From contig JAKMXF010000313.1 of assembly GCA_024704765.1 (NCBI GenBank), forward strand, positions 279,450-343,449: a DNA stretch of 64,000 nt, given 5' to 3'. This DNA is from Oopsacas minuta (Eukaryota > Animalia > Porifera). The stretch's first letter is position 1. Each line of letters opens with the position of its first letter. The position numbers and the translations under genes were made by a program. The notes under the pieces are model-generated. The model was not told where the DNA came from, ran no database searches, and saw nothing but the letters and a program-made list of their open reading frames with translations. Positions 3,883 to 64,000 of the stretch are shown here, in pieces.

Positions 3883-4975
3883 TCTGTATTCTGCTATGTA
3901 CTAATCAAAGAAAATATATCATTCGATTAGGTTTTGAGTAATATTTATATTGTTAAGCAGATTTAAAGATTATGGCAGTATCATGTTTCCTCCGGTTAAG
4001 ATTACGAGTTTATGTACTCGAGGGCAGTAGACCCGAGTAAGGACACGAATTGTTTGCAACTGCGTAGCGGCAAGTTAAATATAAATTTAATCATTAATTA
4101 TATAATAAGAAGAAATGCCTTCATTTATAAATAGGACTTTTCCCCATGTTTGATTCATGTTGGTGCAATGGAACTGTAACTGGTAACAGCACTAGGTCAG
4201 GAATTTTTACTCAATTTTCAATATATTGGAAGCTGAGTATACAAGATAACTCAGCTGACTTATTTAGATTTCTTCAATATAGAAACTATTATAGTTGAGA
4301 AATTAATCATGTATAGGCCTCAGAGTTTGTTTATAATAACATTGACGCGTGAACTAAACTAATATAAGGAATGGAAACTACAATTATTTTCTGGACCAGA
4401 GATAAATAAGAAATGCATTGTAGTTAATTCCAAGTTAATAACTCATGAAGCTATCATAAAGTTTCACAAATTTGACGTGATGAATCACAAATTCACATCT
4501 AGAAAATATTTTCAAATCGAAAAGACTTCATGTGATCGCCTAATAGGCTGATATGTTAGAAAAATGCTAAGGCTATAAAACGCAAAATATTGATCTTAGA
4601 TTTCAAAGTTCAATTACGAAATATTCGAAATATAATTGTATACGAAATATCAATAATTGTCGTGATAAGGTTAGCTAGTTCTTGAGTTACAGTTGGAACC
4701 ATAGATTGCACTTCTATGTCAATACTCACTTTTAACTCGATAATCGTTACAATATAGTAATATCAAGATAGCTAATTTATATTACATACTCTGATAATAC
4801 TTTTTGATCTGATATCTCGTACCATTATGACGTAATCCTGGGTATGCCCATATATGGTCATTTTCAAGTTGCGCATTAATCTTCAGAGATGTCAGATTAA
4901 AATGTAATAGCAAAAGCTGTTCCTATTCAAATAACCTCAACTAATACAATTCAAGTATATTATAAAACAAAGTTA

Positions 4976-6505
4976 TTAAGATGTAAGTTCTTTCATTATA
5001 TCCGTCAGCATTGGCACATGCTCTCCCTTAGTTGTTTGCTTTACTGCATAAGTACTGATAGCAGCGAATCCTCCAAACAAATCACAAACGTTATATCCCA
5101 TTCCCTCCAGCAGTGACATTGCAGTTGATGACCTGAACCCTGATTTGCAGTAGCAAATGTATTTATTATCTTTTGAGAGTTTCCCTGCTTCAGCTCTGAT
5201 ATTTTGAAGAGGCAAGTTGAATTTAGCATGAGTGAGATGATTGCTATTGTACTCTAACGGGAATCTTACATCTATAAAGGTATAGCCCTCAGCAAGTAGT
5301 TGAGTTACATCTTCTTCATTCTTGACTCGCTTCCTCTTTTCAGAGATTGAAACAGGTAGACCAGCTGCTTTCCAGGCTTTGAACCCACCCTGCAGACAGG
5401 TAGACACGGTGTAGCCAATCCTAGCGATCCTCTGTACTGATTCCGCCTCTTTTCCCTCTTCAGCTACGACTGCTAGTCTCTCTTCTCCTCCCAAAACATA
5501 ACCCAGTAGCATTGCGAAATTTCCATCAGTTACTCCTATCTTAGCTCCTCCTTCTCCCCCCAGGTAGAAATGGATTGATTTGGGAATGTGTCCCTTCTGG
5601 AATTCTGTACTAGACCGGGTGTCTATTACTATCACATTTTCTGCTTCCAATTTTTCTAAGAACTCAGCTGGAGCCAGCAGTGAGACTTTGGACATAACTT
5701 CTGCTAACACTTCGCCCCCACTCAGATTACTGCTTACTGCCTGTGAGAAGTATGCCGGAACATTGCCTATATCTTTACAGAGAAAATCTACGAATTCCTC
5801 AACCTTCCCAGAGAATTGAAGAGCGGGGTTGCTGGCTCTCTGATTCCCTATAGTAGACCAAAGATCTCCTTGTATTGCTCTTCCACAGGGAGATCCAGGA
5901 CCATGAGCAGGAAACACAATTACGTCATCAGACAGTGCCAGAACCTTCTCATACAATGTACTGTACATGAGTAGAGCCATCTGTTGGGGAGTCTTGACTT
6001 TCTCGTTCACAAGGTCAGGCCTGCCTACAGATCCTACGAATAGAGTATCTCCAGTGAAAGCTGCTAAACCTTTCCCAGTAGAAATGTCTTGCAGCAAATA
6101 CACACAGGATTCCATAGTATGTCCTGGACTGTGGATGTAATAGAAATTATATTTTTCGGACAGTTTAAAGTGTTCACCATCTTTAACTTCTGTAAATGGA
6201 AATCCAACTTTTGATTTATCAATTGGGCCTAGGAAAATCGGAGCTCCAGTGCGAATGTTTACTTCTTTGTGACCTGCAACAAAATCTGCGTGAATGTGGG
6301 TGAGAAAAATCGCGCGTAATTCATACCCCTTCAGATCCTCTAAGTAAGAATCGATATCTCTTCTTGGATCAATCAGAACAGCACTATTCTCATGGATAAT
6401 GATATATGAGGTTTGAGCAAGGCAAGATAGAAAGTATGTGCGAATTTCTACCTCACCAATCGTCTGTTTTGAAACTAGTCCACTTGGTAGTGTAACAGAC
6501 TGCAT
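4976..6505 (-). CDS. MBL-fold persulfide dioxygenase with two rhodanese domains (CstB/Blh-like, bacterial type)
   Basis: MBL motifs THIHADFVAGH, SPGHT, FTGDTLFVGSVGRPDL and PAHGPGSPCG. First rhodanese has IDTRSSTEFQKGHIP but no obvious active-site Cys; second has IDVR..EY..NH and YCKSGFRS. Confidence 0.88.
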   Translation of the reverse strand: MQSVTLPSGLVSKQTIGEVEIRTYFLSCLAQTSYIIIHENSAVLIDPRRDIDSYLEDLKGYELRAIFLTHIHADFVAGHKEVNIRTGAPIFLGPIDKSKVGFPFTEVKDGEHFKLSEKYNFYYIHSPGHTMESCVYLLQDISTGKGLAAFTGDTLFVGSVGRPDLVNEKVKTPQQMALLMYSTLYEKVLALSDDVIVFPAHGPGSPCGRAIQGDLWSTIGNQRASNPALQFSGKVEEFVDFLCKDIGNVPAYFSQAVSSNLSGGEVLAEVMSKVSLLAPAEFLEKLEAENVIVIDTRSSTEFQKGHIPKSIHFYLGGEGGAKIGVTDGNFAMLLGYVLGGEERLAVVAEEGKEAESVQRIARIGYTVSTCLQGGFKAWKAAGLPVSISEKRKRVKNEEDVTQLLAEGYTFIDVRFPLEYNSNHLTHAKFNLPLQNIRAEAGKLSKDNKYICYCKSGFRSSTAMSLLEGMGYNVCDLFGGFAAISTYAVKQTTKGEHVPMLTDIMKELTS

Positions 6506-6806
6506 AGTATGTCTACAATGTTATACAAGGGATTCAACATAAATTAAATATTAATGAGGATAGTTAAGATTATTAAGAGACTGGCATCGTATCCATTCTA
6601 GAATCGTCGGCTAGCTGTGTAATTGTAAATGATACCATTGGTCAGATCCTATCAATACAAGTTTCCTGCCAAATACCATCCTTTCAATAATATCCCTGAA
6701 AGTTGTAAAAGTAACATTAGAACTACACCCAGTATAAGTTTGATAGTATCTTGAAGGATGAAATTATATCTATAGGAATTTAAGTTGGGTGAACAAAATA
6801 TGATTT

Positions 6807-6978
6807 CAAAAATTACAACCTGTGCCGACAGCTTAGTCTATTCATTAAATTTGTTTAATAAGTGGCACTATGTGCATTGGGATTAATCCTGACCTTTCAT
6901 AGTGCCTCCAATTAATAGTGCCATTTATTAAACAAATTTAATTAATAGACTAAGCTGTCTGTACAGGTTGTAATTTTG
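6807..6978. mobile_element. Small fold-back MITE (about 170 bp, about 64-bp arms)
   Basis: CAAAAATTACAACCTGTGCCGACAGCTTAGTCTATTCATTAAATTTGTTTAATAAGTGGCACTA is inverted with few mismatches at the right end. A related arm fragment (GACAGCTTAGTCTATT) occurs at about 36670. Confidence 0.65.
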
Positions 6979-7982
6979 TATTTTTTCCTCGCTGCGCTCG
7001 GATTTCAAATCCACCAAACAATTTATTTACAAATTAATATGATCATCCAGCCTATATAATCTTTAATTTGTTTGCAGTAAATATCAGTTGACTAAATAAT
7101 ATTAATAGAAGGGGATACTGGAGGAGATTTCATCGGTACAAAGTCAAGAGTGTCAAATTCGGAATCAGCGTATTGAATTACCCTCTTTTGCTTTTTAGAA
7201 CAATCTACGATTATCCAAAGGTTATATAATCGGGCAGATACATGTCTTTAAACTATCCATGGTTAATTTGAAAATATTATATTCATAAATATAATAGAAA
7301 TAATTAATTCTATCCAGTTTTGGCTGCAGGGCTTTACGGAGAAAAAATATAGAACAAATAATATTATAGGCAACCATTTCAATACTTGGCCACTATACTA
7401 AAGTATAGTCGGCACAGTAAAAACCCCGAAAATTAACCTAATTTGGTGAGACTTTAAGATAGTACAACACTCATGAAAGTTGATTCAGATAAAAAGCAAT
7501 TGTAGATTTGGATACACTTACATGTTTCTAATCATTCTCAAGATATAAATAAGAAAATTTCTCACTGGAAGCGAATAACCCACTGTGTATAGTGTATACC
7601 GTGATTACCATTTATTTGTAGAACCAGATATCTCTGGATTAGTAGAATAATTCCACAACTTGTTGAAAATGATTTCAATCTACGTATTTCAGATATCTAT
7701 ATAACAAGATCACTTGATAGGTCAATGCTCTGTTTCCAAAAGCCTGATGTAAGCTAAATTAATATACGTAACTTCAGGTTGTTTATTCTATTAGAATTAT
7801 GCAAAAGTAAATTAACGTGCGAACTTTTAAAACTCACCATCAGTGATGAACACGTAATATAAATTTTGATTCTATTTAATTAAATTAGACTCTGCAATTA
7901 CGTCATAATGGAACTGACACTATATATACACATGTATTCTGAATTAAATTTTATCTAAATTATAACTTCTTTAAATTTACAA

Positions 7983-8678
7983 ATGTTTTCACGACGTGCT
8001 GGACCTCCAAAAGGCAAGGAAGATTTACCGAAAGGAGACTATAATAAGTTAGTTGAGAATATAATAGAAAATAGAGAATCAACTTCAGAAATAGAACCCG
8101 ATGGTTTAGAGGAAGCTCAATCAACTTCTACTTTACCTTCTCCCACCAAGTTGGTTGCTCTTACAACATATAATGCACAATCCAATAGAGTAGGAATAAA
8201 TCGTGAAATTACAGATTCTGTCCAAGCAGCACTTGAGTTATTTCTCCCTAACTGTTACATTTCGTGCGATTTATTGGAGATATGGAATCAGTCAGATATC
8301 GAGATAACTCCAGATGAGTCCGGACAATTCCTAATGTATGGAAAATCAGATACTTACCACAAACTTTATGTGTGTTCAAACAAATTTGACATGGGAACCA
8401 AATTCATATTTCTAAATTCTAAATTAATTGGTTCTGAGACTAAATACTATGTAATTAGTCCTTACTACACAGACAACAAGGTACATATACCTAGCAATAA
8501 AATTCTATGTGCAAGTGTTGAGATTACTGAAGCCGTCACTGAAACTCCTCGAGCTGTAGCTAAAGTTTTGCGACAAATTCAAAGAGGAGATAATGGGTTA
8601 CATAGTGATATATTTACTTGGATTATTGAAGGAAGAGATGAATTAGGCATATCAGGACGCAGTATATGCATTATATGA
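7983..8678 (+). CDS. Orphan ORF A (231 aa), paralogous to the overlapping ORF B
   Basis: Open 231 codons. Shares a roughly 150-aa motif series with ORF B (LYVCSNKFD/LYLCINRYD, KFIF, YYVISPY/YYITSPY, CASVEIT/CAAPVDIT, SDIFTW/TDNFNW). No family recognised. Confidence 0.7.
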   Translation: MFSRRAGPPKGKEDLPKGDYNKLVENIIENRESTSEIEPDGLEEAQSTSTLPSPTKLVALTTYNAQSNRVGINREITDSVQAALELFLPNCYISCDLLEIWNQSDIEITPDESGQFLMYGKSDTYHKLYVCSNKFDMGTKFIFLNSKLIGSETKYYVISPYYTDNKVHIPSNKILCASVEITEAVTETPRAVAKVLRQIQRGDNGLHSDIFTWIIEGRDELGISGRSICII

Positions 8679-9433
8679 AGGAAATATATTTGTACTGGAG
8701 AGTTGATGAAATAATATCAAAAGATACAAATATTCAGAGAAATATTATATTATCTGTTCCTACAATTAATACGGACACGTGTCTAAGAATCAAGAGAGAA
8801 CTAACACCTAAACAGTTCAGAAATATTTCCGAAGCTTTGAATATAATTCTCAAACTCCAATTTATAATATTTCCACATAATTCTACTGTAAAATTAGGAA
8901 CAGCGTCCATCGAGCCCAATTCAACCTCTTTTATTAGATTAGCCAATAACTCAAATTTCAAGTTAGGGCCCACAAAAAGCAATTATCTCGGTTATGGAAT
9001 ATTTACTACCAATCCTAACCTCTACTTATGTATCAATAGATATGATAGAATGATCGTTAAGTTCATATTCCAATGGTATTCTGCTGGCAGATATTACATA
9101 ACTAGCCCTTATAAACCAAAAATACTGCAAATCAATGGTGGAATTCCTTGTGCAGCACCTGTTGATATAACTTATGCTTTGAATGCTTTCAACCCTGTAG
9201 ATGCAATTGCTCAAGTCATTTCTGGGCTTACAACAGGGGAAGACAGATACAGTTTTGCTACTGATAACTTTAATTGGTTTATTCAGCAAAATAGAGAGGA
9301 AGTAACGGTTCGTTCAAATAGAATTGTCACTAGCGATCTTCTCTACTGGCAAGCAACTGAATCTCAAGGAGTCATCCAACTGGCAAAGAGAGATCCACTG
9401 AAGTTGAGGATTGAATGTTTTAATTTAACATAA
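8666..9433 (+). CDS. Orphan ORF B (255 aa), overlaps ORF A by 13 nt in the -1 frame
   Basis: Open 255 codons with internal homology to ORF A. May be the frameshifted second half of one two-repeat protein. Confidence 0.7.
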   Translation: MHYMKEIYLYWRVDEIISKDTNIQRNIILSVPTINTDTCLRIKRELTPKQFRNISEALNIILKLQFIIFPHNSTVKLGTASIEPNSTSFIRLANNSNFKLGPTKSNYLGYGIFTTNPNLYLCINRYDRMIVKFIFQWYSAGRYYITSPYKPKILQINGGIPCAAPVDITYALNAFNPVDAIAQVISGLTTGEDRYSFATDNFNWFIQQNREEVTVRSNRIVTSDLLYWQATESQGVIQLAKRDPLKLRIECFNLT

Positions 9434-9745: not shown

Positions 9746-10906
9746 TGGTCCTAGGGTGAGATGTCCCCCCTTTAAAAATACATGTACAAGGATTATCACC
9801 AAAACAATCATAGGCGTCATTCACCAGGCCTTATCTTTCCAGTTAACTGTTATATCCGAATTCATTACCTACACTTTACTCTTTTCTCTCCATAACCTAA
9901 CTTATTACTGGCTCTCGGACACATTACTATCGGGCCCTGGTACTTTGGTACATGGTACCAGACTCACCCCTTCTCGCGGGCCCTGGCCCTCGTGTCCTGC
10001 GCCTATGTATTATATTAATATACTACTTGCACTTGTGGTGGAAAACAATGTGTTCAATTTCAGTAGGTTAATGTATACATACTGTCAAACCCTCGAGGGC
10101 TGGGCTGACTTGGACAGTATGTGACAGTATATCACGAGGCGTCTCGTGATTTCGTTTAATTTATACCGACTCCCCTAGCAAGTACCGTCGAGACCTATGT
10201 TATCCCGATTTCATAGGCTATAATATTCCTTGCGATCCTTTCATCCTGAATTATTCTATTTTATTCTGATATTCTACGTACGAGTTTTTGGCTCGTCGCT
10301 TCGCGATGAACTCGACGCATTGCGCCTCGAGGTATTCAACGGACAGACAAACAGACAAACTACAATTGAGATTTAATAATATTGATGTTGTTTACAATAT
10401 TCAGACTCAGCATACTCGAGTATACCAGTATTGCCGTTGAAAATATGATTCTACCACAATATTGAAATTTGTTTACTTTATGTACCTAAAGGTAAACAAA
10501 TATTCACAATATGTTGTTTGCATGCGTTTACTTTACATTCATAAAACCAACAATAAATTTACATATGATTAATCCAAAAATGTGAAAATCGGATTCAGGA
10601 TGTTCGATATATTTAGTGAAGTATTATTGAATTCTATTTACTTCCTTGATAAACACGATAAATACATAGTTTTAGCGTGTCAATTTCAAAATTGCATACC
10701 GTAAATCCTTTCCTTGACAACGGACAAACAAACAGACAGACAGACAGACAGACAACAATTGAGATTTAATAATATAGATTACAGATTGCCTCAAGGCCAA
10801 ATAATCGCGAAAGTCGGTTGAGAAGCACTTCTCCACATATTAGTCTCTCTCTAAGAATCTGGGTATACTTGGTGGCACTTTTGGGGGACATCTCGCCCTA
10901 GGGCCA
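9746..10906. mobile_element. Probable TIR non-autonomous element hosting a Helitron-like insertion
   Basis: 24-bp inverted repeat with 2 mismatches: TGGTCCTAGGGTGAGATGTCCCCC (9746-9769) and GGGGGACATCTCGCCCTAGGGCCA (10883-10906). True termini and TSD not resolved. Confidence 0.4.
10281..10778 (-). mobile_element. Non-autonomous Helitron-like element
   Basis: On the minus strand: A|TCTATATTATTAAATCTCAATTG, a (GTCT/GTTT)n microsatellite, and a 3' end GCGAAGCGACGAGCCAAAAACTCG|T. No TSD. Homologous to 11449-12203. Confidence 0.7.
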
Positions 10907-11448
10907 GATGATTGGGAACCCTCTGACAACGGTACTACATAATTCAGATTAATAAAATATTAGTACATCTCTCTGTCATCAGATATCATCCTCAAATAAA
11001 TGCTGTGGCCTGTTGGGTCTACATTCAACAAGCACTGTTGTAGAGCAGATTGTTGCGATTCACATGATATGTTCCAATCAAATCGGAGAGTTTTTATGAA
11101 TTTTGGGACATAGTTTAGTGACATTCTTTTTATATTTTTCTCAATATTATCTGACTAAGTCTCGCTACGTTCGCTCATTCCTCACACAATAATTTAATAG
11201 CTACATATAAGAGATAATATATACCCCGTGCCCGAAGTGCACCTCTTGACACGAGTGTTTGGAAGTTAACAATATGGTTACATTTTAAGTCCATTATTAC
11301 AAGCAAACGAATATTTAAGGAAACAACATCTCTATAGAATGTCCAGGGAATTTAGTTGAAAATGGTTGGTACTTGGTAAGATGCAATCATCTTGAAAGAT
11401 GCATGAGCTCACTATTGGTCTGTTGACGGGACCTTTATTATATATTAA

Positions 11449-12203
11449 TCTATATTATTAAATCTCAATTGTTGTTTGTTTGTTTGTCCGTTGTCAAGGA
11501 AAGGATCTACGGTATACAATTTTGAAAATGTCGCATAACTATGTATTTATCGTGTTTATCAAGGAAGAAAATATAATTCAATAAAACTGCACTAAATGTA
11601 TCGAACATGCTGAACCCGATTTTCACACTTTTGGATTAATCATATGTAAATTTAATGTTGTTTTTATGAATATAAAATAAACAAATTTCAAAATTGAGGT
11701 ACAATCATACTTTCAACGACTATACTGGGGTACTCGAGTATGCTGAGTCCGAATATGGTATTGTAAACAACATATTGTGAATACTAGTGTACTTTTAGGT
11801 ACATAAAGTAAACAAATTTCAAAATTGAGGTATAATCATACTTTCAAGGACTATACTGGGGTAATCGAGTATGCTGAGCCCGAATATGGTATTGTATACA
11901 ATATATTGTGAATATTTGTTTACTTTAGCTACATAAGTAAACAAATTTCAAAAATGTTGTATAATCATACTTTCAACGACTATACTTGGGGTAATCGAGT
12001 ATGCTGAGTCCGAATATGGTATTGTAAACAATATATTGTGAATATTTGTTTACTTTTAGGTACATAAAGTAAACAAATATTGAATATTGTAAACAACATC
12101 AATACTATTAAATCACAATTATTGTTGTCTGTTTGTTTGTCCGTTGAATACCTCGAGGCGTAATTCGGCGAGTTCATCGCGAAGCGACGAGCCAAAAGGC
12201 TCG
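11449..12203 (+). mobile_element. Non-autonomous Helitron-like element with internal tandem expansion
   Basis: A|TCTATATTATTAAATCTCAATTG, (GTTT)n, and a 3' hairpin ACGAGCC-AAAA-GGCTCG|T. No TSD. Confidence 0.72.
11679..12081 (+). repeat. About 130-bp tandem repeat, 3 copies, with a hairpin at the unit junctions
   Basis: Unit AAACAAATTTCAAAATTGAGGT...GTATGCTGAGTCCGAATATGGTATTGTAAAC...TTTAGGTACATAAAGT starts at about 11679, 11811 and 11939. A 16-bp stem pairs 12041-12056 with 12066-12081. Confidence 0.85.
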
Positions 12204-51763: not shown

Positions 51764-54700
51764 ATGTCTAAGATTATCTTATGTGGAGCGAGTTCAGTTG
51801 GTAAGACAACTCTGTCTAACGATTGGTGTAAGAGAAATAAAGAGTACGCTCAGATTCAAGAAGTAGCTAGAGATGTTATGACTGAAAAAGGAATAACAAG
51901 AGATCACATGACCAAATCTCTGCGAACTGATAAGAAACTTTTCTTTGATCTTCAAAAATCAATTTTCGTAGAACAAAACAAGAGAGAGACTTCGCTTGGA
52001 GATACGCAATTCATTTCTGATCGTGGACCAGATCCTCTGGTCTACACATTCTTAGAAGATGAGGACGAAGCACACGCCTTGTTCGAGCATGGAGCTGTCG
52101 AGGGTTGCTTCAATCTATATCGAAAATCTTTAGTTGTTCTTTTGTGTCCATTAGATAATTCAGTTGATGATGGATTTAGATTGGTTCAGTCAACTGAAGA
52201 ACAGTATCAATTCACAGACGGGTTGCATCGAGTGTTACAAAAATATAATGTTCCATATATAACCATGAATGAGAGAGATCGGGAGAAACGTTTAGAAATA
52301 CTAAAGTTAGCTGTGCGGGGTCAGTTACCTATCTCTGCGGACCAGTTCAAGGCACAGTTAAGGCTTACATTTTACATGGACCGTGAAGCTACGAAAAATG
52401 ATAGATATTATCCTCCCTGCCTCCCTATGATTAAGCAGGGAAAGGAAGCTCGGATTCGTACGTTTGACATAAATCCGAATGATATACTTTTAACTCGTCC
52501 ACCAATGGACAACTACCAAACTAATAGAATGGTAGATCGTTATGGTGAGGATAACTTTGTACTGATTCAGTTTCACAGAAAGTTGTCAGAGAGCTACATT
52601 AGAGAGGTTCTACAAAAAGGAATCTATGTAAATGGAGATGAGTATCAATTTCTTGGGTGTAGTTCTACCGGGCTGAAAGTTAAGAAGTGTTATTTTCTAA
52701 AAGGAAACGTTAAGCATATTGAGGATGTATTGCTTGAGTGTGGTAACTTTTTGAAGATTAATATGGTCTCCAAGAGGCTGAAGAGAATCAGTTTGCTATT
52801 TTCTGTCGCAATCAACACTGGAGTTATAGTCCCTGACAATAAAGTAAAGGTCATTGATGACATTGAAAATAAGGAAGGAAATTTTACTGATGGATGTGGG
52901 TTTGTTGGATTAGCTCTTGCCGAGAAGCTCGCGAAAGCATCAAACGCGACTATTAACTCACCGGAGGATAAAGTGCCAGCTGTTTTCCAGATCAGATTCC
53001 AAGGTTTCAAAGGGATTCTTATTAAGAGCCCACACATTGATAAAGATTCTATACAAGTCAGAAAATCTATGCAAAAATTCTTTCCCGGAACAGACCCGTT
53101 TCAAGAAGTGTGGGTGTGTAAGCATTCTCGTCCTAATTCCTACGGTCACCTAAATATACAATTTATAGTGCTGTTGTCTGGACTAGGGATAGCTGATGAA
53201 GTCTTTCTGAAAAAGCAGGAAGAGTTCTTTTCTGTGGTTGAGAATATGTTAGTAAAACGAGAGTATGCAATTAAGCTTCTGAACTGGCGCGATTATCCAG
53301 ATGTAGCCATGTTTGTAGCCAGATGTACATCCAATGAGGAAATGAAGAATAATGTTTCTGTTCAGAACACATTGAAATTTATCAGGACTAAGTTGATAGA
53401 TAAAATGGATAAACTAAGCATACCAGTAATCAAATCACGGACTCTATTTGGCGTGTGTGATCCTTTAGGACTTATGCAATATGGAGAATGCTTCGTTAGA
53501 ATTTCTGTTAACGGATCTCCCCAGACTCTACAGCATGGCATGTCTGTAACTGTTGGTAAGAACCCCTGCTATCTCCTTGGGGACGTTAGAGTTCTGAAGG
53601 CAGTTGACTACCCAGAATTAAACCATTTAGTTGATTGCATAGTATTTCCTGTCAAAGGAGTGAGACCTCATTCTGTCGAGATAGCTGGATCTGACTTAGA
53701 CGGAGATGAATACTTTGTGTGCTGGGATGCAGCCCTGATCCCTCGTCGTATTGTTGCACCCTATAGCTACCCTTCGATTGACGCACCACCTTCTGACAAA
53801 GTGACAAGAGCTATGATGATAGACTACTTCTCCAGCATGACTGATATGATGGGTAAGATCAATAACTGTTTCCAGTATTGGGCTGATACTGTAGGACCTG
53901 GCTGTAAGGAATGTGAAGAACTTGGTGCCTGGTTCTCTCGCAGCGTAGATTCTTCAAAAACAGGCGATAAAGTACGTCTACCCAATTATCTTAAACCTCC
54001 CAGAAATAATCCCCCTCAGGAAGTAGCTGAGAAAGTTTGGGTTAAAATGAAGAATTTAGCGCTTAAACGCAAAAAGCTCCTGACTAAAGAGATCACTGAT
54101 GATGCCCTGAATCAAGAGATCACTGATGATGCCCTGAATCAAGAGATCACTGATGATGCCCTGAGTCAAGAGATCACTGATGATGCCCTGAGTCAAGAGA
54201 TCACTGATGATGCCCTGACTAAACAATCTTCTATCTCTGCTATTCCTGAGGATTTTATTACAAATTTGTTGCAGGATAATGATAGAGGAATTTCTGAATA
54301 CAAAGTGTTCTGTCTAATGTATAAGTGGTGCGATTCACTGCAACTAAATGATGCTGATAAGTTGGAAAAAATTCGCACGTTATCTGATTATATCAACTTT
54401 GGTAAGCTGACGATGAAAGAGAGAATTGAAGCTATTCAACTAGGCGTACCCAGAGCTAAGGTTATGAATGCTTTGAATAAGTCTAAACTCCTCAACAAGC
54501 AAATGCTAAAATCTTTCTACTTTGACCTACCTTCTTGTGGATGGAAGTTTTATCTCAGAGAGAGTAGTGCTGATTTCGATTGGAGACACCTATTCCGCGC
54601 TATTAACGGGTATCCTGAATCATTGTTAATCTTACAGCTACAGGATGGACACATCCAATATAGACTAGGATTTCATTTCATTGGACCGTTTAAAGAAGGA

Positions 54701-57700
54701 GAATCAATTATTCCTGCTGGGTCCCTAACTTCTTATTTCTTCTCTCCTCAATTCGGCTATAAGTTGAGATACGTCACAGAACGCGAATACAATCTTAATC
54801 TCACTGAGGAAGTTATTCAGTTCTATCGCGATAATGATGTTAAGAACACATTTCTCTGGTTAAGAAGTCAAATAAAAAGTGTAAAGGGTGACCAACATGT
54901 TGATTACGATAGGGTTAGCATAGACCTGAACAGATTCAAAAGGACCATTTTAAGAATTGATCGTCATCCCAAGATCAATAAAATGAACTTCCTTACAGCT
55001 GAAATATTCGTTAAGAATGTTTCTATTGAAGAGACAGCTTACTTTGATATATACGAATCTGATCAGCCAGGGGATCTCTTTACGAGTGAGTTTGAAGATT
55101 CTGAGTTACTTGAAGAATTGCCAAGTGATGATGAGGATGATAGAGATGTGTTACCGATTGTTTTTGACACACCCCTCGAAGCTCTGGAGGGATTTGCTAA
55201 GAGAGGAGATTGTCTAAAGTTTAGAGAAGTGTTTGAAAGTATAACTAATTCAGAAGATAATATTCCCAGCTCCAGATTATTAATAAAAGCATTCTTATCT
55301 TTAATCGCGAATATGGTAGTTAGATATTCTCACAAGAGCTCTATAGAGTTACTTAAAGCTTCAGAATTACATAGGAATGCAGGAGCAAAGGATGAATGGC
55401 CAAATATACAAACAACAGCACAAGCAAAAGAACCCAAACCACAAACTTGGCCAACTGTACAAACTAATGAACAGAAATTACAAACATCACCAGCATCAGA
55501 ACCAAAAGTACAAGAACTACATGCATCACCAACAATACAAACAATACCGACTGTACAAAATAATATACAAAGCACAGGACCACATGTACAACCTGGTCCA
55601 AAAATAATAACAGGACTAGATCTACCAACTCCACAACATGCAGGAACTAAAATGGTAAAAGATTATGTGAAGATATTCGTATCTATAGAGAATATGTTGA
55701 ACTCCTTACACATCACTTTTACCAGTCCGAAAGATTTGTTAGTCCTCTACTCTTATCTCAGTAGACTTCATCTCTATGATATCATTAACAAACATATAAT
55801 TACTTCGCTTGATAAAATCGAAATATCTACTCACGCTCAATACTTTGACTGTGTATTCAATTGGGAGTTGTGGTGCTTCTTGTCATTGTCTGTCTCTCAT
55901 CAGTTATCAAACAGACTATACACACTATATCTTACATTAGAAGATACTGATAGATCAGTAAATAATGAGGTTACAATTCCCAGCAGTTTACAAGAACTGT
56001 CTGTCACTTGCAATGATCCCCCGCCAGTTGATCACACACAGCTAAAGCGCTACAAGTGCTACTTTGCGCACTTAATGCTAAATCACCTGCTAGCTGAGTC
56101 TCCAGGACAGGAAGAGTATGCTAAGGTTAAAGATACAGAGAACAGTGTGTGTAAGCTTAGAGTACTTCCCGCTAAGAGAGAGGTAACTGTAAGCACAGAT
56201 CTACAGAGCAGCAGTGAGGAAGATATTGAGGATACAACTGCTGTAGTGGAACAAGTGAAAAGCAAGAAAAAGTGTAAACCCTGGAAAGCCTGTTTCTCTC
56301 GACTGAACCAAGTTACATCTAGTAAGTTCTCAAATGGTTCCTATGTTAAGATTCGTTTCTTAGCGTTGTCTACTTCTACTCATTCTAGCGAGCCCATTGC
56401 ATTAGGTCGTATCTCGCAGTACTCTTGGAGTCCTGCTAGCATTACAGTTGACATCCTAGAACCTGTCCCTGACTGTCTCAAGAGATCAGCTGATCTGAAG
56501 AAAGGGTTCTGGGCGCTCACTCTACTCGGCAATGTCACCAGCTTTAAGAGATCGAGTAAAGCACTTCAGTCCTTATATACCCCAGGAATTGTATCAATCC
56601 TCATCTCCCCAGAGGCTTTTCCTCCTAACATAATCCAGCAAGAGAATACTATAGACATTTCAATCCAACAACCTGAAGCTGTTCTTGAATCTGTAAAGAG
56701 AGATAATCCGTATACTTCATTTCCTGGCTGTAATGCCTGTGAGCATAGAGCTAGCCTCAATCAGAGTCAAGAGAATGCTATCCATGCATCTCTGAAACAA
56801 CGATTAACTCTGATACATGGACCTCCAGGCACTGGAAAGACTTTTGTTGCAGCTGAAATTGTCCATCAGATGAGTCATATGGAAGATAAATCTAAAATAT
56901 TAGTAGCTGCTGAAACAAATAACGCAGTGGACAATCTCACACGGAAACTTGTAGATCTGGGAATGCTAGTTGTACGCGTTGGGAAGAGGAATACAATATC
57001 AAAGGATCTACACGAACACTCATTAGATCACCAGGTAGAGATGAAACGAGTTGAGCTGGGCGAGAGTAAGAAGGGAGAGTTTCAATCTCCAAAGCTTAAG
57101 AAAGAAATCCTCAATGCTGCTGAAATAATAGCAACAACCTGTACAGGAGCTGGAGATAGTGATCTAAAAACAATTAAATTCTCTTATATTCTTATTGACG
57201 AAGCTACTCAAGCTATTGAACCAGTATCTCTTATATCCATAGCTAAGTCATGTGACAAGCTAATCCTTATTGGGGATCCTAAACAGCTGGCTCCGACGTT
57301 ACCAGAAAAACATGATCAACGAGAAAATATTCCTGAGGGTACGCCCCCTTATGATGCTCTGAGTGTTACTCTATTCCACAGACTCTGTACGAAGTTAGAG
57401 CCGATATTCTTGGACGAGCAACATCGTATGCACCCTGCTATCGCCGAATTTCCTTCTATGATGTTCTACGCAGGTAAATTGAGGACAGCTGTTAAGGAAA
57501 AGGACAGGATACCTCCTAATGTTCAGTTTCTTTCTCCGAACAAACCGATTATTTTTATCAATGCTGAAACTCCAGAATATCGAGCAGGCACTTCTTGGAA
57601 GAATCCCGGAGAAGCTGAATTAGTAGTAAAGATAATCAAACAGCTGATGGCTACTAGTGAGTGTACAGTATCAGATATTGGTGTCATTACTCCTTACACA

Positions 57701-58276
57701 GGTCAAGTTAGGTGCATTAGAGACGGGCTAGATAATATTAAGGTGGAAGTTAACTCTATAGACGGCTTTCAAGGCAAGGAAAAAGAAATAATCGTATTTA
57801 GCACAGTACGAAACACTAAGGGTAGTGAATTAGCGTTCATAAAGGATCATCACAGAATAAATGTTCTTCTAACCAGAGCTAAACGAGCTCTCATTGGAAT
57901 TGGGAATCAAAACACGCTAAGTAGATCTGAGATTTGGGATAAGTGGACTAGATTATACCTTAGGACTAATAGTGAATACGGCAATGGTCACATTGAGCCA
58001 CAATCCAAAGAAGATAATAAACAGAATGCACCGTTTGATGCCGCCAATACTACTAAGCCTAAGGTTGGCAAACCTCCTCAAATGCATACCTACTCTAGAA
58101 ACAAGTCTGATAACTACAACCCTACCAGAGAAAGAGATCACACAGACCACCTGTATAAGCACTCAGATCGAGTCACAACAATCAATTTGACTCCAAAAAA
58201 AAAAATTTCACAGAAAAAGAGGAAATATGGTGGAACAGGCAAACCTGAAAATATTGATTCTTCTGAGAAGGATTGA
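51764..58276 (+). CDS. NadR/AAA_28-type P-loop + RNA-dependent RNA polymerase + Upf1-like SF1 helicase fusion (2170 aa)
   Basis: N-terminal GASSVGKTT, EVAR and SDRG. RdRP motifs FTDGCG, QIRFQGFKG, KNPC and GSDLDGDEYFVCWD (DLDGD at 53693-53707). Helicase motifs GPPGTGKT (56819-56842), DEATQ, GDPKQL, QHRMHP, TPYTGQV, IDGFQGKE and NVLLTRAK. Confidence 0.93.
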   Translation: MSKIILCGASSVGKTTLSNDWCKRNKEYAQIQEVARDVMTEKGITRDHMTKSLRTDKKLFFDLQKSIFVEQNKRETSLGDTQFISDRGPDPLVYTFLEDEDEAHALFEHGAVEGCFNLYRKSLVVLLCPLDNSVDDGFRLVQSTEEQYQFTDGLHRVLQKYNVPYITMNERDREKRLEILKLAVRGQLPISADQFKAQLRLTFYMDREATKNDRYYPPCLPMIKQGKEARIRTFDINPNDILLTRPPMDNYQTNRMVDRYGEDNFVLIQFHRKLSESYIREVLQKGIYVNGDEYQFLGCSSTGLKVKKCYFLKGNVKHIEDVLLECGNFLKINMVSKRLKRISLLFSVAINTGVIVPDNKVKVIDDIENKEGNFTDGCGFVGLALAEKLAKASNATINSPEDKVPAVFQIRFQGFKGILIKSPHIDKDSIQVRKSMQKFFPGTDPFQEVWVCKHSRPNSYGHLNIQFIVLLSGLGIADEVFLKKQEEFFSVVENMLVKREYAIKLLNWRDYPDVAMFVARCTSNEEMKNNVSVQNTLKFIRTKLIDKMDKLSIPVIKSRTLFGVCDPLGLMQYGECFVRISVNGSPQTLQHGMSVTVGKNPCYLLGDVRVLKAVDYPELNHLVDCIVFPVKGVRPHSVEIAGSDLDGDEYFVCWDAALIPRRIVAPYSYPSIDAPPSDKVTRAMMIDYFSSMTDMMGKINNCFQYWADTVGPGCKECEELGAWFSRSVDSSKTGDKVRLPNYLKPPRNNPPQEVAEKVWVKMKNLALKRKKLLTKEITDDALNQEITDDALNQEITDDALSQEITDDALSQEITDDALTKQSSISAIPEDFITNLLQDNDRGISEYKVFCLMYKWCDSLQLNDADKLEKIRTLSDYINFGKLTMKERIEAIQLGVPRAKVMNALNKSKLLNKQMLKSFYFDLPSCGWKFYLRESSADFDWRHLFRAINGYPESLLILQLQDGHIQYRLGFHFIGPFKEGESIIPAGSLTSYFFSPQFGYKLRYVTEREYNLNLTEEVIQFYRDNDVKNTFLWLRSQIKSVKGDQHVDYDRVSIDLNRFKRTILRIDRHPKINKMNFLTAEIFVKNVSIEETAYFDIYESDQPGDLFTSEFEDSELLEELPSDDEDDRDVLPIVFDTPLEALEGFAKRGDCLKFREVFESITNSEDNIPSSRLLIKAFLSLIANMVVRYSHKSSIELLKASELHRNAGAKDEWPNIQTTAQAKEPKPQTWPTVQTNEQKLQTSPASEPKVQELHASPTIQTIPTVQNNIQSTGPHVQPGPKIITGLDLPTPQHAGTKMVKDYVKIFVSIENMLNSLHITFTSPKDLLVLYSYLSRLHLYDIINKHIITSLDKIEISTHAQYFDCVFNWELWCFLSLSVSHQLSNRLYTLYLTLEDTDRSVNNEVTIPSSLQELSVTCNDPPPVDHTQLKRYKCYFAHLMLNHLLAESPGQEEYAKVKDTENSVCKLRVLPAKREVTVSTDLQSSSEEDIEDTTAVVEQVKSKKKCKPWKACFSRLNQVTSSKFSNGSYVKIRFLALSTSTHSSEPIALGRISQYSWSPASITVDILEPVPDCLKRSADLKKGFWALTLLGNVTSFKRSSKALQSLYTPGIVSILISPEAFPPNIIQQENTIDISIQQPEAVLESVKRDNPYTSFPGCNACEHRASLNQSQENAIHASLKQRLTLIHGPPGTGKTFVAAEIVHQMSHMEDKSKILVAAETNNAVDNLTRKLVDLGMLVVRVGKRNTISKDLHEHSLDHQVEMKRVELGESKKGEFQSPKLKKEILNAAEIIATTCTGAGDSDLKTIKFSYILIDEATQAIEPVSLISIAKSCDKLILIGDPKQLAPTLPEKHDQRENIPEGTPPYDALSVTLFHRLCTKLEPIFLDEQHRMHPAIAEFPSMMFYAGKLRTAVKEKDRIPPNVQFLSPNKPIIFINAETPEYRAGTSWKNPGEAELVVKIIKQLMATSECTVSDIGVITPYTGQVRCIRDGLDNIKVEVNSIDGFQGKEKEIIVFSTVRNTKGSELAFIKDHHRINVLLTRAKRALIGIGNQNTLSRSEIWDKWTRLYLRTNSEYGNGHIEPQSKEDNKQNAPFDAANTTKPKVGKPPQMHTYSRNKSDNYNPTRERDHTDHLYKHSDRVTTINLTPKKKISQKKRKYGGTGKPENIDSSEKD
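54080..54223 (+). repeat. In-frame 27-bp minisatellite, about 5.3 copies ([Q/K]EITDDAL[N/S/T])
   Basis: Unit AAGAGATCACTGATGATGCCCTGAATC, nearly identical copies, directly after the RdRP domain. Confidence 0.95.
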
Positions 58277-60229: not shown

Positions 60230-61415
60230 TAATAAATGCTTAAAGTGAAAATAAAATGTCAGAAAGGATGTGGAGAGGTTTACAAAATGTGACACAATAG
60301 ATCCCAGAAATAGTGTCCTTTCCGAAATCAAAGGTGCGAGTAATGTAGAAAAGTAAAAGCTAACAGAACAAACGAACACGCTAGAATTTGTCTAGACAAT
60401 CCAGATGGTGGTGTTACATGTCCTTATGAGGAAGTGAGTTGTGAGACAATTGAAACAGCAAGAAAGGACGTGGACACAAATATAACTCAGAATATGATTA
60501 GTCACCAGAAATTATTGCTACATGAATTAAATCAGCTGAGAATTGGTAGCGAACAGCTGAGTTACAAAATGGATAAGAAGGGATTTGAAACAACAAACAA
60601 ACCAACCAATTTGTATAGAAATGATACAAATAATAACAAGACTATATCGATTTGTTAGCACTAGTTATCATGGTATAGCTATTCTAATCCCTCTCCTACT
60701 TATGGAGAGAGATAGGAGAACGAACTGTCTATGCAGTCACATGAACAGTCTATACAGTCACATGAACTATCTGTACAGTCACATGAACAGTCTATACAGT
60801 CACATAAACAGTCTATACAGTCACATGAACTATCTATACACTCACATGAACAGTCTATACAGTCACATAAACAGTCTATACAGTCACATGAACTATCTAT
60901 ACACTCACATAAACAGTCTATACAATCAACCAAACAGTCTATACAATCTACCAAACCTTATACACTTCTATCTACAATACAATTGGAATGGAAGATTAAA
61001 GGTGTTAAACAAAATATAGAGAACAAAGGGAATACTCTCAGTGATCCATTCTATGTAGGTTTATACAAGTGTCAGGGCTATATTGAATGGAATTGTTTGA
61101 ATGCAGATAAAGTAGGTGTTTTCATTTGTATTATGAAAGGAGCTTATGATGATAAACTACACTGGCTTATCAGATACAAATATACATTAATTCTACTCAA
61201 TCACATTAACATTAATAATAATTATGAAACACTACTCAAGTAACTAAGGAAGATTTGGAGATTTATTCTAATAGCTTCAGGAGACCTACTCAGCTGAGAA
61301 ATGATGAAGGTTTTGGATCTTCTTCATTAATTTCAAACACTGTAATATTAGAAGCTAATATTGTAAAGACAGCATAACTCTTCTAATTAAAATAGAATTA
61401 TTACCAGCATTATAA
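60230..61415 (+). pseudogene. TRAF-family pseudogene (zinc-finger remnant, coiled coil, MATH domain)
   Basis: IKCQKGCG and CPYEEVSCE remnants; MATH peptides LEWKIKGV..SDPFYVGLYKCQ..VFICIMKGAYDDKLHW continuing after a frameshift as SFRRPTQLRNDEGFG...ITLLIKIELLPAL*. Several stops and frameshifts. Confidence 0.8.
60722..60952 (+). repeat. 21-bp (heptad-coding) tandem repeat, 11 copies
   Basis: Unit GAACAGTCTATACAGTCACAT. Units 4-6 and 7-9 form a 63-bp higher-order duplication. Confidence 0.95.
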
Positions 61416-61937
61416 CTTTATTTGTATTTTTGTTTACTCTTTACTCAGAACGTATTTACCTAAACATTAGTTTATTGATTATTCCCATTATTTACAACTA
61501 ACATCTATTATTTCCTTTTCGCTACAAAGCTTGGTTTACAACTTGTCGATTCTCAATACGACTTCTTGAGATGCGAAGGAAATTTGGTTGGATTATTGGA
61601 TGATATTCATTTGTGTCCTAATCTATATGCGTGGAATTCCAGTGTTGGAGCTGTTGTTGCATATCAGAAAAACGTCTTAACCTGTCCTCTATGATTTGTC
61701 CCCACTTGAGCGAAACCCACTTGAGTGAAATCCATTAAGCCAATTATTTACTGTTTAATAAATGAATTATTTTAATAAGATTCAAAACAAGTACATAAAT
61801 GAAATGTAAGAATATTAATCACAGAGAAAATATTTGTTGGTTGTGCAATATTATGAGCAACTCCGGTTAAATATTCATCAGCACTCTTCTGTCCCAAGTT
61901 AAAAGATACGGATACCGACAATTCGCACCTAATTTGA

Positions 61938-62645
61938 TTGGGCCTACTGTATCCACTTGCCCAGCCTCAACAGATGCTCCTGGACTTTGAGAAGGGCCCG
62001 ATTACCAGCTTTGAGCATGTCTGGCCTAACACAGTAGTGAAGTGCTGCTTCTTCCACCTCACACAGAATATCTGGCGACATGTGCAGTCTGTAGGGCTGC
62101 AGTCTGCCTACACACATGACGAAGAGTTGGCTATGTGCATCCGGAGGATACCAGCCCTTGCTTTTGCCCGACCAGCAGACGTACACGATCTGTTTGATCA
62201 AGTGGCAATGGACCTCCCCCTTACGTCTGAGATAGGCGAACTAGTCGACTACTTTGAGAGGACGTATATCGGTCGCACGCTAGCCAGTGGATACCATGTA
62301 GCGGCGACGTTCCCCATCGACCTGTGGAACTACCACCTCAGCACGCCCTTCGGGCTCCCCCGTACAACCAACGCCGTGGAGGCATGGCACCACAGCTTCA
62401 ATGCCACTGTCGGCTGCCATCACCCCACCATATGGAAGTTCCTCCTAGCCCTCAAGCGTGAGCAGGGCCTAGTGGAGGTGCGGCATACTAACTACCTCGT
62501 TGGCAAGCCACCAACCAAGCGAAGGCGGTCCCAACAGAGTGAGGAAGCGTTGAAGACTCTAGTTCGTGAATATTATTCTCAAGATCGTTCTAAAATGGAG
62601 TTCTTGCAGGGTGTAGCACATCATTTCAGTCTGGGAGCCGATTAA
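61938..62645 (+). pseudogene. 5'-truncated MULE transposase, left arm
   Basis: LDFEKG, CCFFHLTQNIWR and RTTNAVEAWH are present; the first catalytic Asp region is missing. The ORF starts right after the terminus. Confidence 0.88.
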
Positions 62646-62713
62646 CATGTTAATCTAAAGGATTATCTAGCCCTCAAATACATTGATTAGAGATAATCCT
62701 TTAGATTAACATG

Positions 62714-63421
62714 TTAATCGGCTCCCAGACTGAAATGATGTGCTACACCCTGCAAGAACTCCATTTTAGAACGATCTTGAGAATAATATTCACGAACTAG
62801 AGTCTTCAACGCTTCCTCACTCTGTTGGGACCGCCTTCGCTTGGTTGGTGGCTTGCCAACGAGGTAGTTAGTATGCCGCACCTCCACTAGGCCCTGCTCA
62901 CGCTTGAGGGTTAGGAGGAACTTCCATATGGTGGGGTGATGGCAGCCGACAGTGGCATTGAAGCTGTGGTGCCATGCCTCCACGGCGTTGGTTGTACGGG
63001 GGAGCCCGAAGGGCGTGCTGAGGTGGTAGTTCCACAGGTCGATGGGGAACGTCGCCGCTACATGGTATCCACTGGCTAGCGTGCGACCGATATACGTCCT
63101 CTCAAAGTAGTCGACTAGTTCGCCTATCTCAGACGTAAGGGGGAGGTCCATTGCCACTTGATCAAACAGATCGTGTACGTCTGCTGGTCGGGCAAAAGCA
63201 AGGGCTGGTATCCTCCGGATGCACATAGCCAACTCTTCGTCATGTGTGTAGGCAGACTGCAGCCCTACAGACTGCACATGTCGCCAGATATTCTGTGTGA
63301 GGTGGAAGAAGCAGCACTTCACTACTGTGTTAGGCCAGACATGCTCAAAGCTGGTAATCGGGCCCTTCTCAAAGTCCAGGAGCATCTGTTGAGGCTGGGC
63401 AAGTGGATACAGTAGGCCCAA
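62714..63421 (-). pseudogene. 5'-truncated MULE transposase, right arm
   Basis: Translation is identical to the left arm except KFLLTLK versus KFLLALK. Confidence 0.88.
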
Positions 63422-64000
63422 TCAAATTAGGTGCGAATTGTCGGTATTCCAAAAGATAAAGTAAGGTTTCTAATATTTTCGTTGATTTGCCTGTATTTTA
63501 TATTCTTGGAATAAGCGTTTACATTTCCGATATTTATTTGAGCTAATAGCGTTTCTGTACATCCTTGCTCTCTAATGAGTTTTGACACAAATTCATAGAT
63601 ATTCGCGTGTGCCTTTACAATCGTTCTATTTAATCTTAAATGCCAACATTCCAGATTATTATTTGTTCTTCGTTCTACTCCATACATATTCCAAAGTTTA
63701 TGGTTCACAGTTTCAATCCAGTACTGTTGAAAATAGTTTACAAGTGCTTGCAATTCATCAGGGTATTCGTGCTTTAGATCTTGAAATGTTTGAGGGATAA
63801 GTTCAACCGGTATAAAGGCCAAGGCAAGAAGCTTTCGTATATACCTATATATTTTAGGATTTTCTTCAGAAGTATAAAATTGAGATAGGCCCAAAATTTG
63901 TACCTTGCGATAAACTGCTTGGCAAAAATGGAAATAGCATCCACGGATACAGGCTGTAGGAATTCCAATCTAATGCTGGCTATCAGTCCGCTTTCAAAAT

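Follow-up and report, generated by a model that had tools for sequence, protein, structure and literature searches.

The window analysed here is a stretch of 64,000 nt of the genome of the glass sponge Oopsacas minuta (GenBank assembly GCA_024704765.1, contig JAKMXF010000313.1); positions are those of this whole 64-kb window unless another locus is named. Near its end is a fold-back at 61909-63450 (1,542 bp, 757-nt arms), which interrupts the 3' coding part of a decayed member of another family of Mutator-like elements (MULEs), called MULE B below. We consider it very probable that this fold-back is a non-autonomous, hairpin-shaped deletion derivative of a Phantom-type (FLYWCH plus MULE DDE) cut-and-paste family of O. 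minuta, here family A, whose members are palindromic. Nine further loci, L001 to L009, were retrieved from the same assembly and make ten copies together with the one in the window. The features of the locus, including the target site duplication (TSD) and the open reading frames (ORFs), are as follows.

61772 to 61900, minus strand: host MULE B downstream of the insertion, with the C-terminal tail NLGQKSADEYLTGVAHNI... running to a stop at 61774-61772 (codon reading)
61901 to 61908, no strand: left copy of the TSD, AAAAGATA, the 8 bases that are ambiguous at the empty-site joint described below
61909 to 61941, plus strand: left terminus, composed of the end CGGATACC, one subterminal CGACAATTCGCACC and then TAATTTGATTGG up to the deletion junction; common to L001, L004, L005, L006 and the full-length L008
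61909 to 62668, plus strand: left arm, the exact inverted repeat beginning at 61912
61938 to 62645, plus strand: 235-aa remnant of a FLYWCH-MULE transposase ORF, corresponding to the C-terminal half, with the FLYWCH finger and the first D deleted
62669 to 62690, plus strand: unpaired 22-nt centre (loop), its position kept in all family copies
62691 to 63450, minus strand: right arm, with the end ...GGTATTCC, the reverse complement of GGAATACC...
62714 to 63421, minus strand: second truncated transposase ORF, differing from the left copy by one A/T residue
63451 to 63458, no strand: right copy of the TSD, AAAAGATA
63459 to 64000, minus strand: host MULE B upstream of the insertion, with CxxH and NNLECWH present and in-frame stops near 63970-63999

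The repeat finder placed the inverted arms at 61912-62668 and 62691-63447, separated by the 22-nt loop AGCCCTCAAATACATTGATTAG. When the arms were compared base by base, a single mismatch was found (G at 62448 vs A at 62911), which confirmed the 757-nt arms and 22-nt loop of a preliminary description of this DNA. The G+C content was about 0.34 around the fold-back and rose to 0.47 in the bin 62001-64000, and the predicted RNA fold of the fold-back was 99% paired (-1666 kcal/mol). As in Foldback-like elements, the long inverted ends make up most of the element. In each arm, a terminus of 33 nt leads directly into the C-terminal half of a transposase of the FLYWCH+MULE ("Phantom") type; at the deletion junction the terminal ...TAATTTGATTGG is joined to CCTACTG..., at about transposase codon 260. 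The loop lies between the halves of a short native inverted repeat, TTATCT...AGATAA.

Comparison with the other copies showed that the element ends are asymmetric, one being CGGATACC and the other GGAATACC. Each is followed by CGACAATTCGCACC in one to five tandem copies, a number that differs between ends and between copies. The TSD had been described as either 8 perfect base pairs or 9 bp at 8/9 identity. Only the former was retained, as AAAAGATA. The 9-bp alternative was rejected because the same extra C occurs in L004, L005, L006 and L008, indicating that it reflects the asymmetric ends and that the window TSD is a perfect 8-bp duplication.

An exhaustive profile search for relatives of the arm protein returned 8,354 proteins. 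The full-length relatives are 460-490 aa long and carry FLYWCH (PF04500) and MULE (PF10551) domains; the arm corresponds to their final ~230 residues. When aligned, the arm protein keeps D16 (DFE), C37xxH40 and E148 (NAVEAWH), and the first-D motif 'ADGTF', which sits upstream of the arm start in full-length relatives, is absent. The earlier claim that each arm joins a terminus to the 3' part of a MULE transposase, with DFE, CxxH and E kept and the first D lost, was thus correct. Since the first D is deleted from the arm ORF, the window copy, judged by its sequence, cannot encode an active enzyme. PF10551 scored above cut-off in the relatives P0008, P0009 and P0017 and in the L008 and L009 gene models, and below cut-off in the window arm because of its truncation. 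PF04500, the FLYWCH finger typical of Phantom, was found in P0006, P0008, P0009, P0017, P0294 and a 480-aa ORF of L009. The TSDs are 8 bp long in the window, L001 and L004 and 9 bp in L005 and L008, within the ~8-11 bp of MULEs. The closest proteins to the arm were O. minuta gene models of GCA_024704765.1, and named matches from spiders, copepods, bivalves and tunicates were 32-36% identical. A search of the PDB gave a FLYWCH-domain structure only, and no MULE transposase structure was found there.

The preliminary description had held that the unit was inserted, with a TSD, into another MULE and that its removal restored the host frame. Both were borne out by the minus-strand reading. The host ORF from 63894 breaks off with ...NLTLSF at the TSD; once the element and one TSD are taken out, the frame stays open through NLGQKSADEYLTGVAHNIAQPT... 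as far as the stop at 61774-61772. The host ORF and the arm protein are homologous, sharing 29% identity across 184 aa (E 4.5e-18). In-frame stops are present upstream of its CxxH motif, indicating that this MULE B copy is itself dead, a pseudogene.

The pre-insertion state was looked for in public sequencing runs that contain parts of the stretch. Four of them come from a single sample, organism A, and two carry a different label, organism B; all are available only as short k-mer contigs, with no record of the kind of library. Contigs were placed on window positions 61001-64000. A joint from 61900 to 63451 was found in run X2 (2 contigs, depth 140) and in run X4 (1 contig, depth 91), both of organism A. 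It skips 1,550 nt with 8 ambiguous bases, exactly the element plus one TSD, so that the precise empty site proposed as a check in the preliminary description is present in the organism A sample. Loose contig ends at 61909 (before the element) and 63450 (behind it) showed the same termini on several other flanks, in organism B as well. The libraries of the O. minuta genome project comprised RNA-seq, paired-end DNA, Nextera mate-pair and PacBio (PMC10280926), and a Nextera adaptor tail suggests that X4 is a mate-pair library.

Further observations were made with the same contigs. Runs X5 and X6 (organism B, a differently labelled 2024 sample) contained family A arm pieces at identities of at least 95% and the same termini on other flanks. 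Family A is thus present outside the genome-source sample, whether this is the same species relabelled, a relative, or a case of transfer. In each of the three runs of the sample, the contig word depth at 61001-61500 exceeded that at the neighbouring 61501-61700 by a factor of 40-2,000, which indicates a high-copy repeat or very abundant sequence. The MULE B part at 63501-63900 reached ~1,000x single-copy depth in X1 and only ~5x in X2 and X4. Reading the very uneven depth of X1 as RNA expression was rejected since the library kinds are unrecorded.

Four of the retrieved loci, L001, L004, L005 and L006, carry the short 1.5-kb form and share both the 22-nt loop and the deletion junction with the window copy. 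Their identity to the window copy was 96.7-99.7% by BLAST and 99.0-99.7% when gap columns were ignored. The flanks of these four copies differ and their TSDs are GTCGATTA, CCCTACTT and CCTTCTTGT, with one imperfect. Fold-back copies with different TSDs, which the preliminary description had proposed to look for, are thus present in the assembly. The same loop and junction on different flanks with different TSDs mean that the fold-back moves as a unit, and from these sequences the short form has transposed at least five times. Together with the empty site, this agrees with the earlier description of a mobilised unit. Other O. minuta gene models at identities of at least 90% hint at more copies. 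L007 and L003 were not used as evidence of mobility as they have no recognisable termini, nor was L009, which has no clear TSD.

These copies also bear on whether the palindrome could be an artefact of assembly or library preparation (a missed PacBio adapter or a chimeric fold-back read) with no counterpart in the genome. Palindromic chimeras are a known long-read artefact. The assembly was built in SPAdes from self-corrected PacBio continuous long reads (CLR) and Illumina reads (PMC10280926), and the run contigs do not directly show the centre, all of which would fit this explanation. However, the two different flanks rejoin into one reading frame with a TSD, and the exact empty site is present. 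The unit with an identical 22-nt centre occurs at four other loci, each with its own flanks and TSD, and longer forms occur at five more. The position of the centre is conserved among copies that differ by up to 11%. An artefact was rejected on the distinct flanks, the TSDs, the empty-site joint and the nine other palindromic loci, and we regard it as extremely improbable.

The palindrome was present in all nine retrieved loci, and palindromic architecture was therefore found in 10 of the 10 O. minuta copies examined, including one with an intact ORF. L008 has the exact termini of the short form, a perfect 9-bp TSD (ATTGTACAG) and a 2.8-kb core with two convergent transposase genes, which have 91-92% protein identity to the arm and are frameshifted; its right side is rearranged. 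Relative to L008, the short form lacks ~1.1 kb per arm, comprising the 5' region, the FLYWCH finger and the first catalytic D, with the junction at a weak GAT..G microhomology. L009 spans 4597-9346 of its locus and has an intact 480-aa FLYWCH-MULE ORF in one arm and a 415-aa copy in the other. In L002 the 1,789-nt arms are 100% identical and carry identical frameshifts. The innermost ~95 nt of the two arms of L002, L003 and L009 are old, diverged versions, alpha (encoding ...EFLQGVAHHFSLGAD) and beta (encoding ...IHQTILRRSSIQV), on either side of a centre whose position matches that of the window copy, whereas L007, L008 and the short forms have alpha on both sides of the loop.

L008 was considered as the direct parent of the short form and rejected. 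The termini are shared, but the identity is only 94-96%, the genes are frameshifted and the right side is rearranged. The exact source of the short form was not found among the retrieved copies. On its right side, at 10180-11127 of the locus, the L008 element contains a pogo/Tc5-like DDE_1 gene, whose probable insertion there would have broken the symmetry of the element.

The palindromic architecture also explains pairs of adjacent, convergent O. minuta gene models with near-identical products (12523/12524, 522/523, 318/319, 8748/8749, 15082/15083, 6058/6059, 15554/15555, 831/832 and 5516/5517). Such convergent pairs of 'MULE transposase domain-containing' models are the two arms of one palindromic element. 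A gene model of another name, LOD99_7689 (514 aa, saccharopine dehydrogenase domain protein), clustered with the arm protein at an identity of at least 90% and may be a fusion of arm sequence to a host gene. In the ENA assembly ERZ25071281 we found four identical copies of a ~60%-identical relative. They are ~2.2 kb long and contain a single gene between inverted ends of 140-190 bp composed of ~15-bp repeats. The existence of this conventional single-gene relative indicates that the twin-gene palindrome is derived.

The arms of a copy evolve together. Within a copy they are 99.3-100% identical, whereas the identity between copies was 89-99.7% (ten copies, over 611 nt). In the five short copies, ~12-13 copy-specific changes, 3 indels included, were found in both arms, against 9 changes in one arm only. 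The both-arm indels are a 1-nt insertion in the window copy, a 15-nt deletion in L005 and a 10-nt insertion in L001. As identical indels cannot arise twice, one arm must template the other. The loop has one orientation relative to the CGGA end in the window copy, L005 and L008 and the opposite one in L004 and L006, a flip predicted by recombination between inverted arms. The outermost asymmetric bases and the repeat numbers were mostly not homogenised between the arms.

Two processes could account for this. Arm-to-arm recombination or gene conversion would keep the arms identical and flip the loop. In the other, one arm and the loop would be copied at each transposition or gap repair, and the strand would then snap back and prime the second arm, so that each palindrome would be perfect at birth. 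The high identity of the arms and the symmetric indels would fit such self-templating, as would the short native inverted repeat around the loop, the alpha/alpha arrangement up to the loop in the short forms, L007 and L008 beside the diverged beta inner end retained in L002, L003 and L009, and L001, in which both ends read GGAA and the arms do not differ at all. Yet most copies are asymmetric at their outermost ends (CGGA vs GGAA) and have unequal subterminal repeats, both of which a full snap-back would erase, and the alpha/beta copies, with 100% identical outer arms around a diverged core, better fit a bounded gene conversion. On these two patterns, bounded gene conversion or recombination is preferred here to a complete re-synthesis by snap-back, and we consider self-templating of one arm unlikely.

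The following scheme is proposed for the palindromic Phantom-type family. Its layout is terminus, transposase gene, ~22-nt centre, inverted transposase gene and terminus, a tail-to-tail palindrome of which the short form has lost ~1.1 kb in each arm. The short form would be moved in trans by the transposase of full-length relatives with the same ends (CGGATACC and GGAATACC plus CGACAATTCGCACC repeats), and its arms would be kept identical by the arm-to-arm exchange that also flips the loop. It made TSDs of 8-9 bp, and the window copy landed in the 3' coding part of the dead MULE B.

Several points weigh against this scheme. The evidence for mobilisation in trans is the shared termini, and L008, which has the same termini, carries frameshifted genes, while the intact-ORF copy L009 has different subterminal repeats and no clear TSD. 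Ten copies cannot separate gene conversion from re-synthesis of one arm off the other. The imperfect TSD among the short sister copies is that of L006. In the run contigs, which are short k-mer contigs, the palindrome centre is neither proven nor contradicted. Variant contigs at both flanks (61806-61869 and 63648-63808) represent a second version of MULE B, ~96% identical, so the empty site could belong to a paralogue of the host copy and need not be allelic; in either case the joint is the pre-insertion sequence. The label Phantom-type was assigned by domain content, TSD and end features and not by phylogenetic placement within Phantom.

If transcribed, the unit would fold into a ~757-bp perfect RNA stem, a potential feed for RNA interference (RNAi). 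The preliminary description had called the locus Mu-killer-like, with read-through from the host MULE B transcript yielding a dsRNA stem against family A. In its full form, this reading would have transcripts from read-through or from the element's own promoter form a long hairpin RNA whose small RNAs repress active family A elements, a heritable and mobile self-silencer. The perfect stem is unavoidable once the unit is transcribed, its arms are 90-95% identical to near-intact and intact members of the family, and Mu killer of maize acts in this way (PMC3440606). Against it, the host MULE B copy is a pseudogene, the depth profiles of the run contigs are unreadable as expression, and intact and near-intact elements bear the same inverted duplication and the family still reached many sites, so that the hairpin did not prevent its spread. 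Neither a small-RNA run nor a clearly labelled RNA run was found among the public runs. Silencing of its relatives by the fold-back, with putative small-RNA production, is plausible; the Mu-killer-like silencer in the full sense described above seems to us doubtful. Because intact elements carry the same inverted duplication, any feed into RNAi would be a property of the whole family and not of a special 'killer' locus. An extension, in which every Phantom MULE copy of O. minuta would be its own RNAi trigger and the abundant short fold-backs would be diced into small RNAs that throttle the family, is also improbable in our judgement. If it were true, an early-branching animal would possess a 'Mu killer' system that moves and limits itself.

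The silencing role had also been linked to an RdRP-helicase gene (RdRP, RNA-dependent RNA polymerase) 3.6 kb away. This distance was correct, as the ORF ends at 58276. It is an intronless ORF of 2,170 aa at 51764-58276 on the plus strand, with an N-terminal AAA_28 P-loop domain, a cellular RdRP domain (PF05183, E 4e-112), a C-terminal Upf1-like helicase (AAA_11/AAA_12) and an internal tandem peptide repeat, EITDDALxQ. However, proximity of genes means little in a compact genome of 61 Mb (PMC10280926). The proximity was rejected as a functional link and taken as coincidence since nothing ties the gene to the element.

The resemblance to Mu killer (Muk) itself is partial. In both cases an inverted duplication of a partial Mutator transposase gene is bounded by two element termini and could yield a long hairpin RNA if transcribed from outside (PMC3440606), and in O. 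minuta the duplicated gene belongs to a family with an intact 480-aa ORF in L009. In contrast, Muk is a single rearranged locus in a family that is otherwise non-palindromic, whereas all ten O. minuta copies are palindromic. The Muk hairpin is the 5' part of mudrA, and the arms of the multi-copy, mobile short form are the 3' half. Muk silencing was shown genetically, and the O. minuta fold-back is known here from sequence alone. Of the Mu-killer-like description, a fold-back of the 3' half of a MULE transposase stands, but not a singular rearrangement of a normal element, as the palindrome is the standard architecture of the family.

Phantom elements with Foldback-like features have been described for Tm1 of root-knot nematodes (Gross & Williamson 2011, PMC3169594; Marquez & Pritham 2010 as cited there) and in Dupeyron et al. 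2019 (PMC6446971). Tm1 and the O. minuta family share an N-terminal FLYWCH finger with a MULE DDE domain, TSDs of 8-10 bp, ends in which a ~14-bp motif is repeated a varying number of times, short outermost motifs that are asymmetric (A1 of Tm1 is CGGTTAA or CGGATAA; those of O. minuta are CGGATACC and GGAATACC) and non-autonomous derivatives resembling miniature inverted-repeat transposable elements. They differ in that the inverted repeat of O. minuta extends through the whole transposase gene to the ~22-nt centre, so that full-length elements carry two convergent gene copies and the arms of the derivative are coding sequence. Galileo '2RT' copies of Drosophila mojavensis (PMC3573991) and Drosophila Foldback (FB) are similar in that their inverted ends are very long, vary in length, contain tandem repeats and become longer by taking in internal sequence, and in that non-autonomous copies are nearly all inverted repeat. 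Galileo, however, belongs to the P superfamily. The greatest length of its inverted ends (~1.1-1.25 kb) is confined to non-coding copies, and these ends do not duplicate the transposase gene (PMC3573991).

In the survey of Dupeyron et al., inverted ends were 14-613 bp long, those of Phantom 18-613 bp, and sponges were not mentioned (PMC6446971). The O. minuta genome paper reported 15.4% DNA transposons but mentioned neither MULEs nor palindromes (PMC10280926). In the literature, we found no MULE described as having its entire transposase gene within the inverted repeat. Fold-back transposons are usually explained by slow expansion of their inverted ends, and the sponge family represents the end point, in which the repeat has swallowed the transposase gene. 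Even its intact-ORF copy is a near-perfect palindrome, its arms evolve in concert and its centre flips. The family therefore offers a natural system for studying the formation, homogenisation and tolerance of long palindromes in an animal genome, a possible entry of built-in hairpins into sponge RNAi, and the origin of non-autonomous hairpin elements. It is also a warning for annotation, since the many convergent identical 'MULE domain' gene pairs in the O. minuta gene set are arms of single elements.

Two other repeats were observed in the window. Between the RdRP gene and the MULE B remnant, at 60680-60973, lie ~14 tandem copies of a 21-bp unit that is open in several frames (e.g. HMNSLYS repeats). 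At 10393-11891 there is a ~1.5-kb element with ~130-280-bp imperfect inverted ends (86-92% identical); its sequence is unrelated to family A, and it is probably a different non-autonomous long-inverted-repeat transposon.

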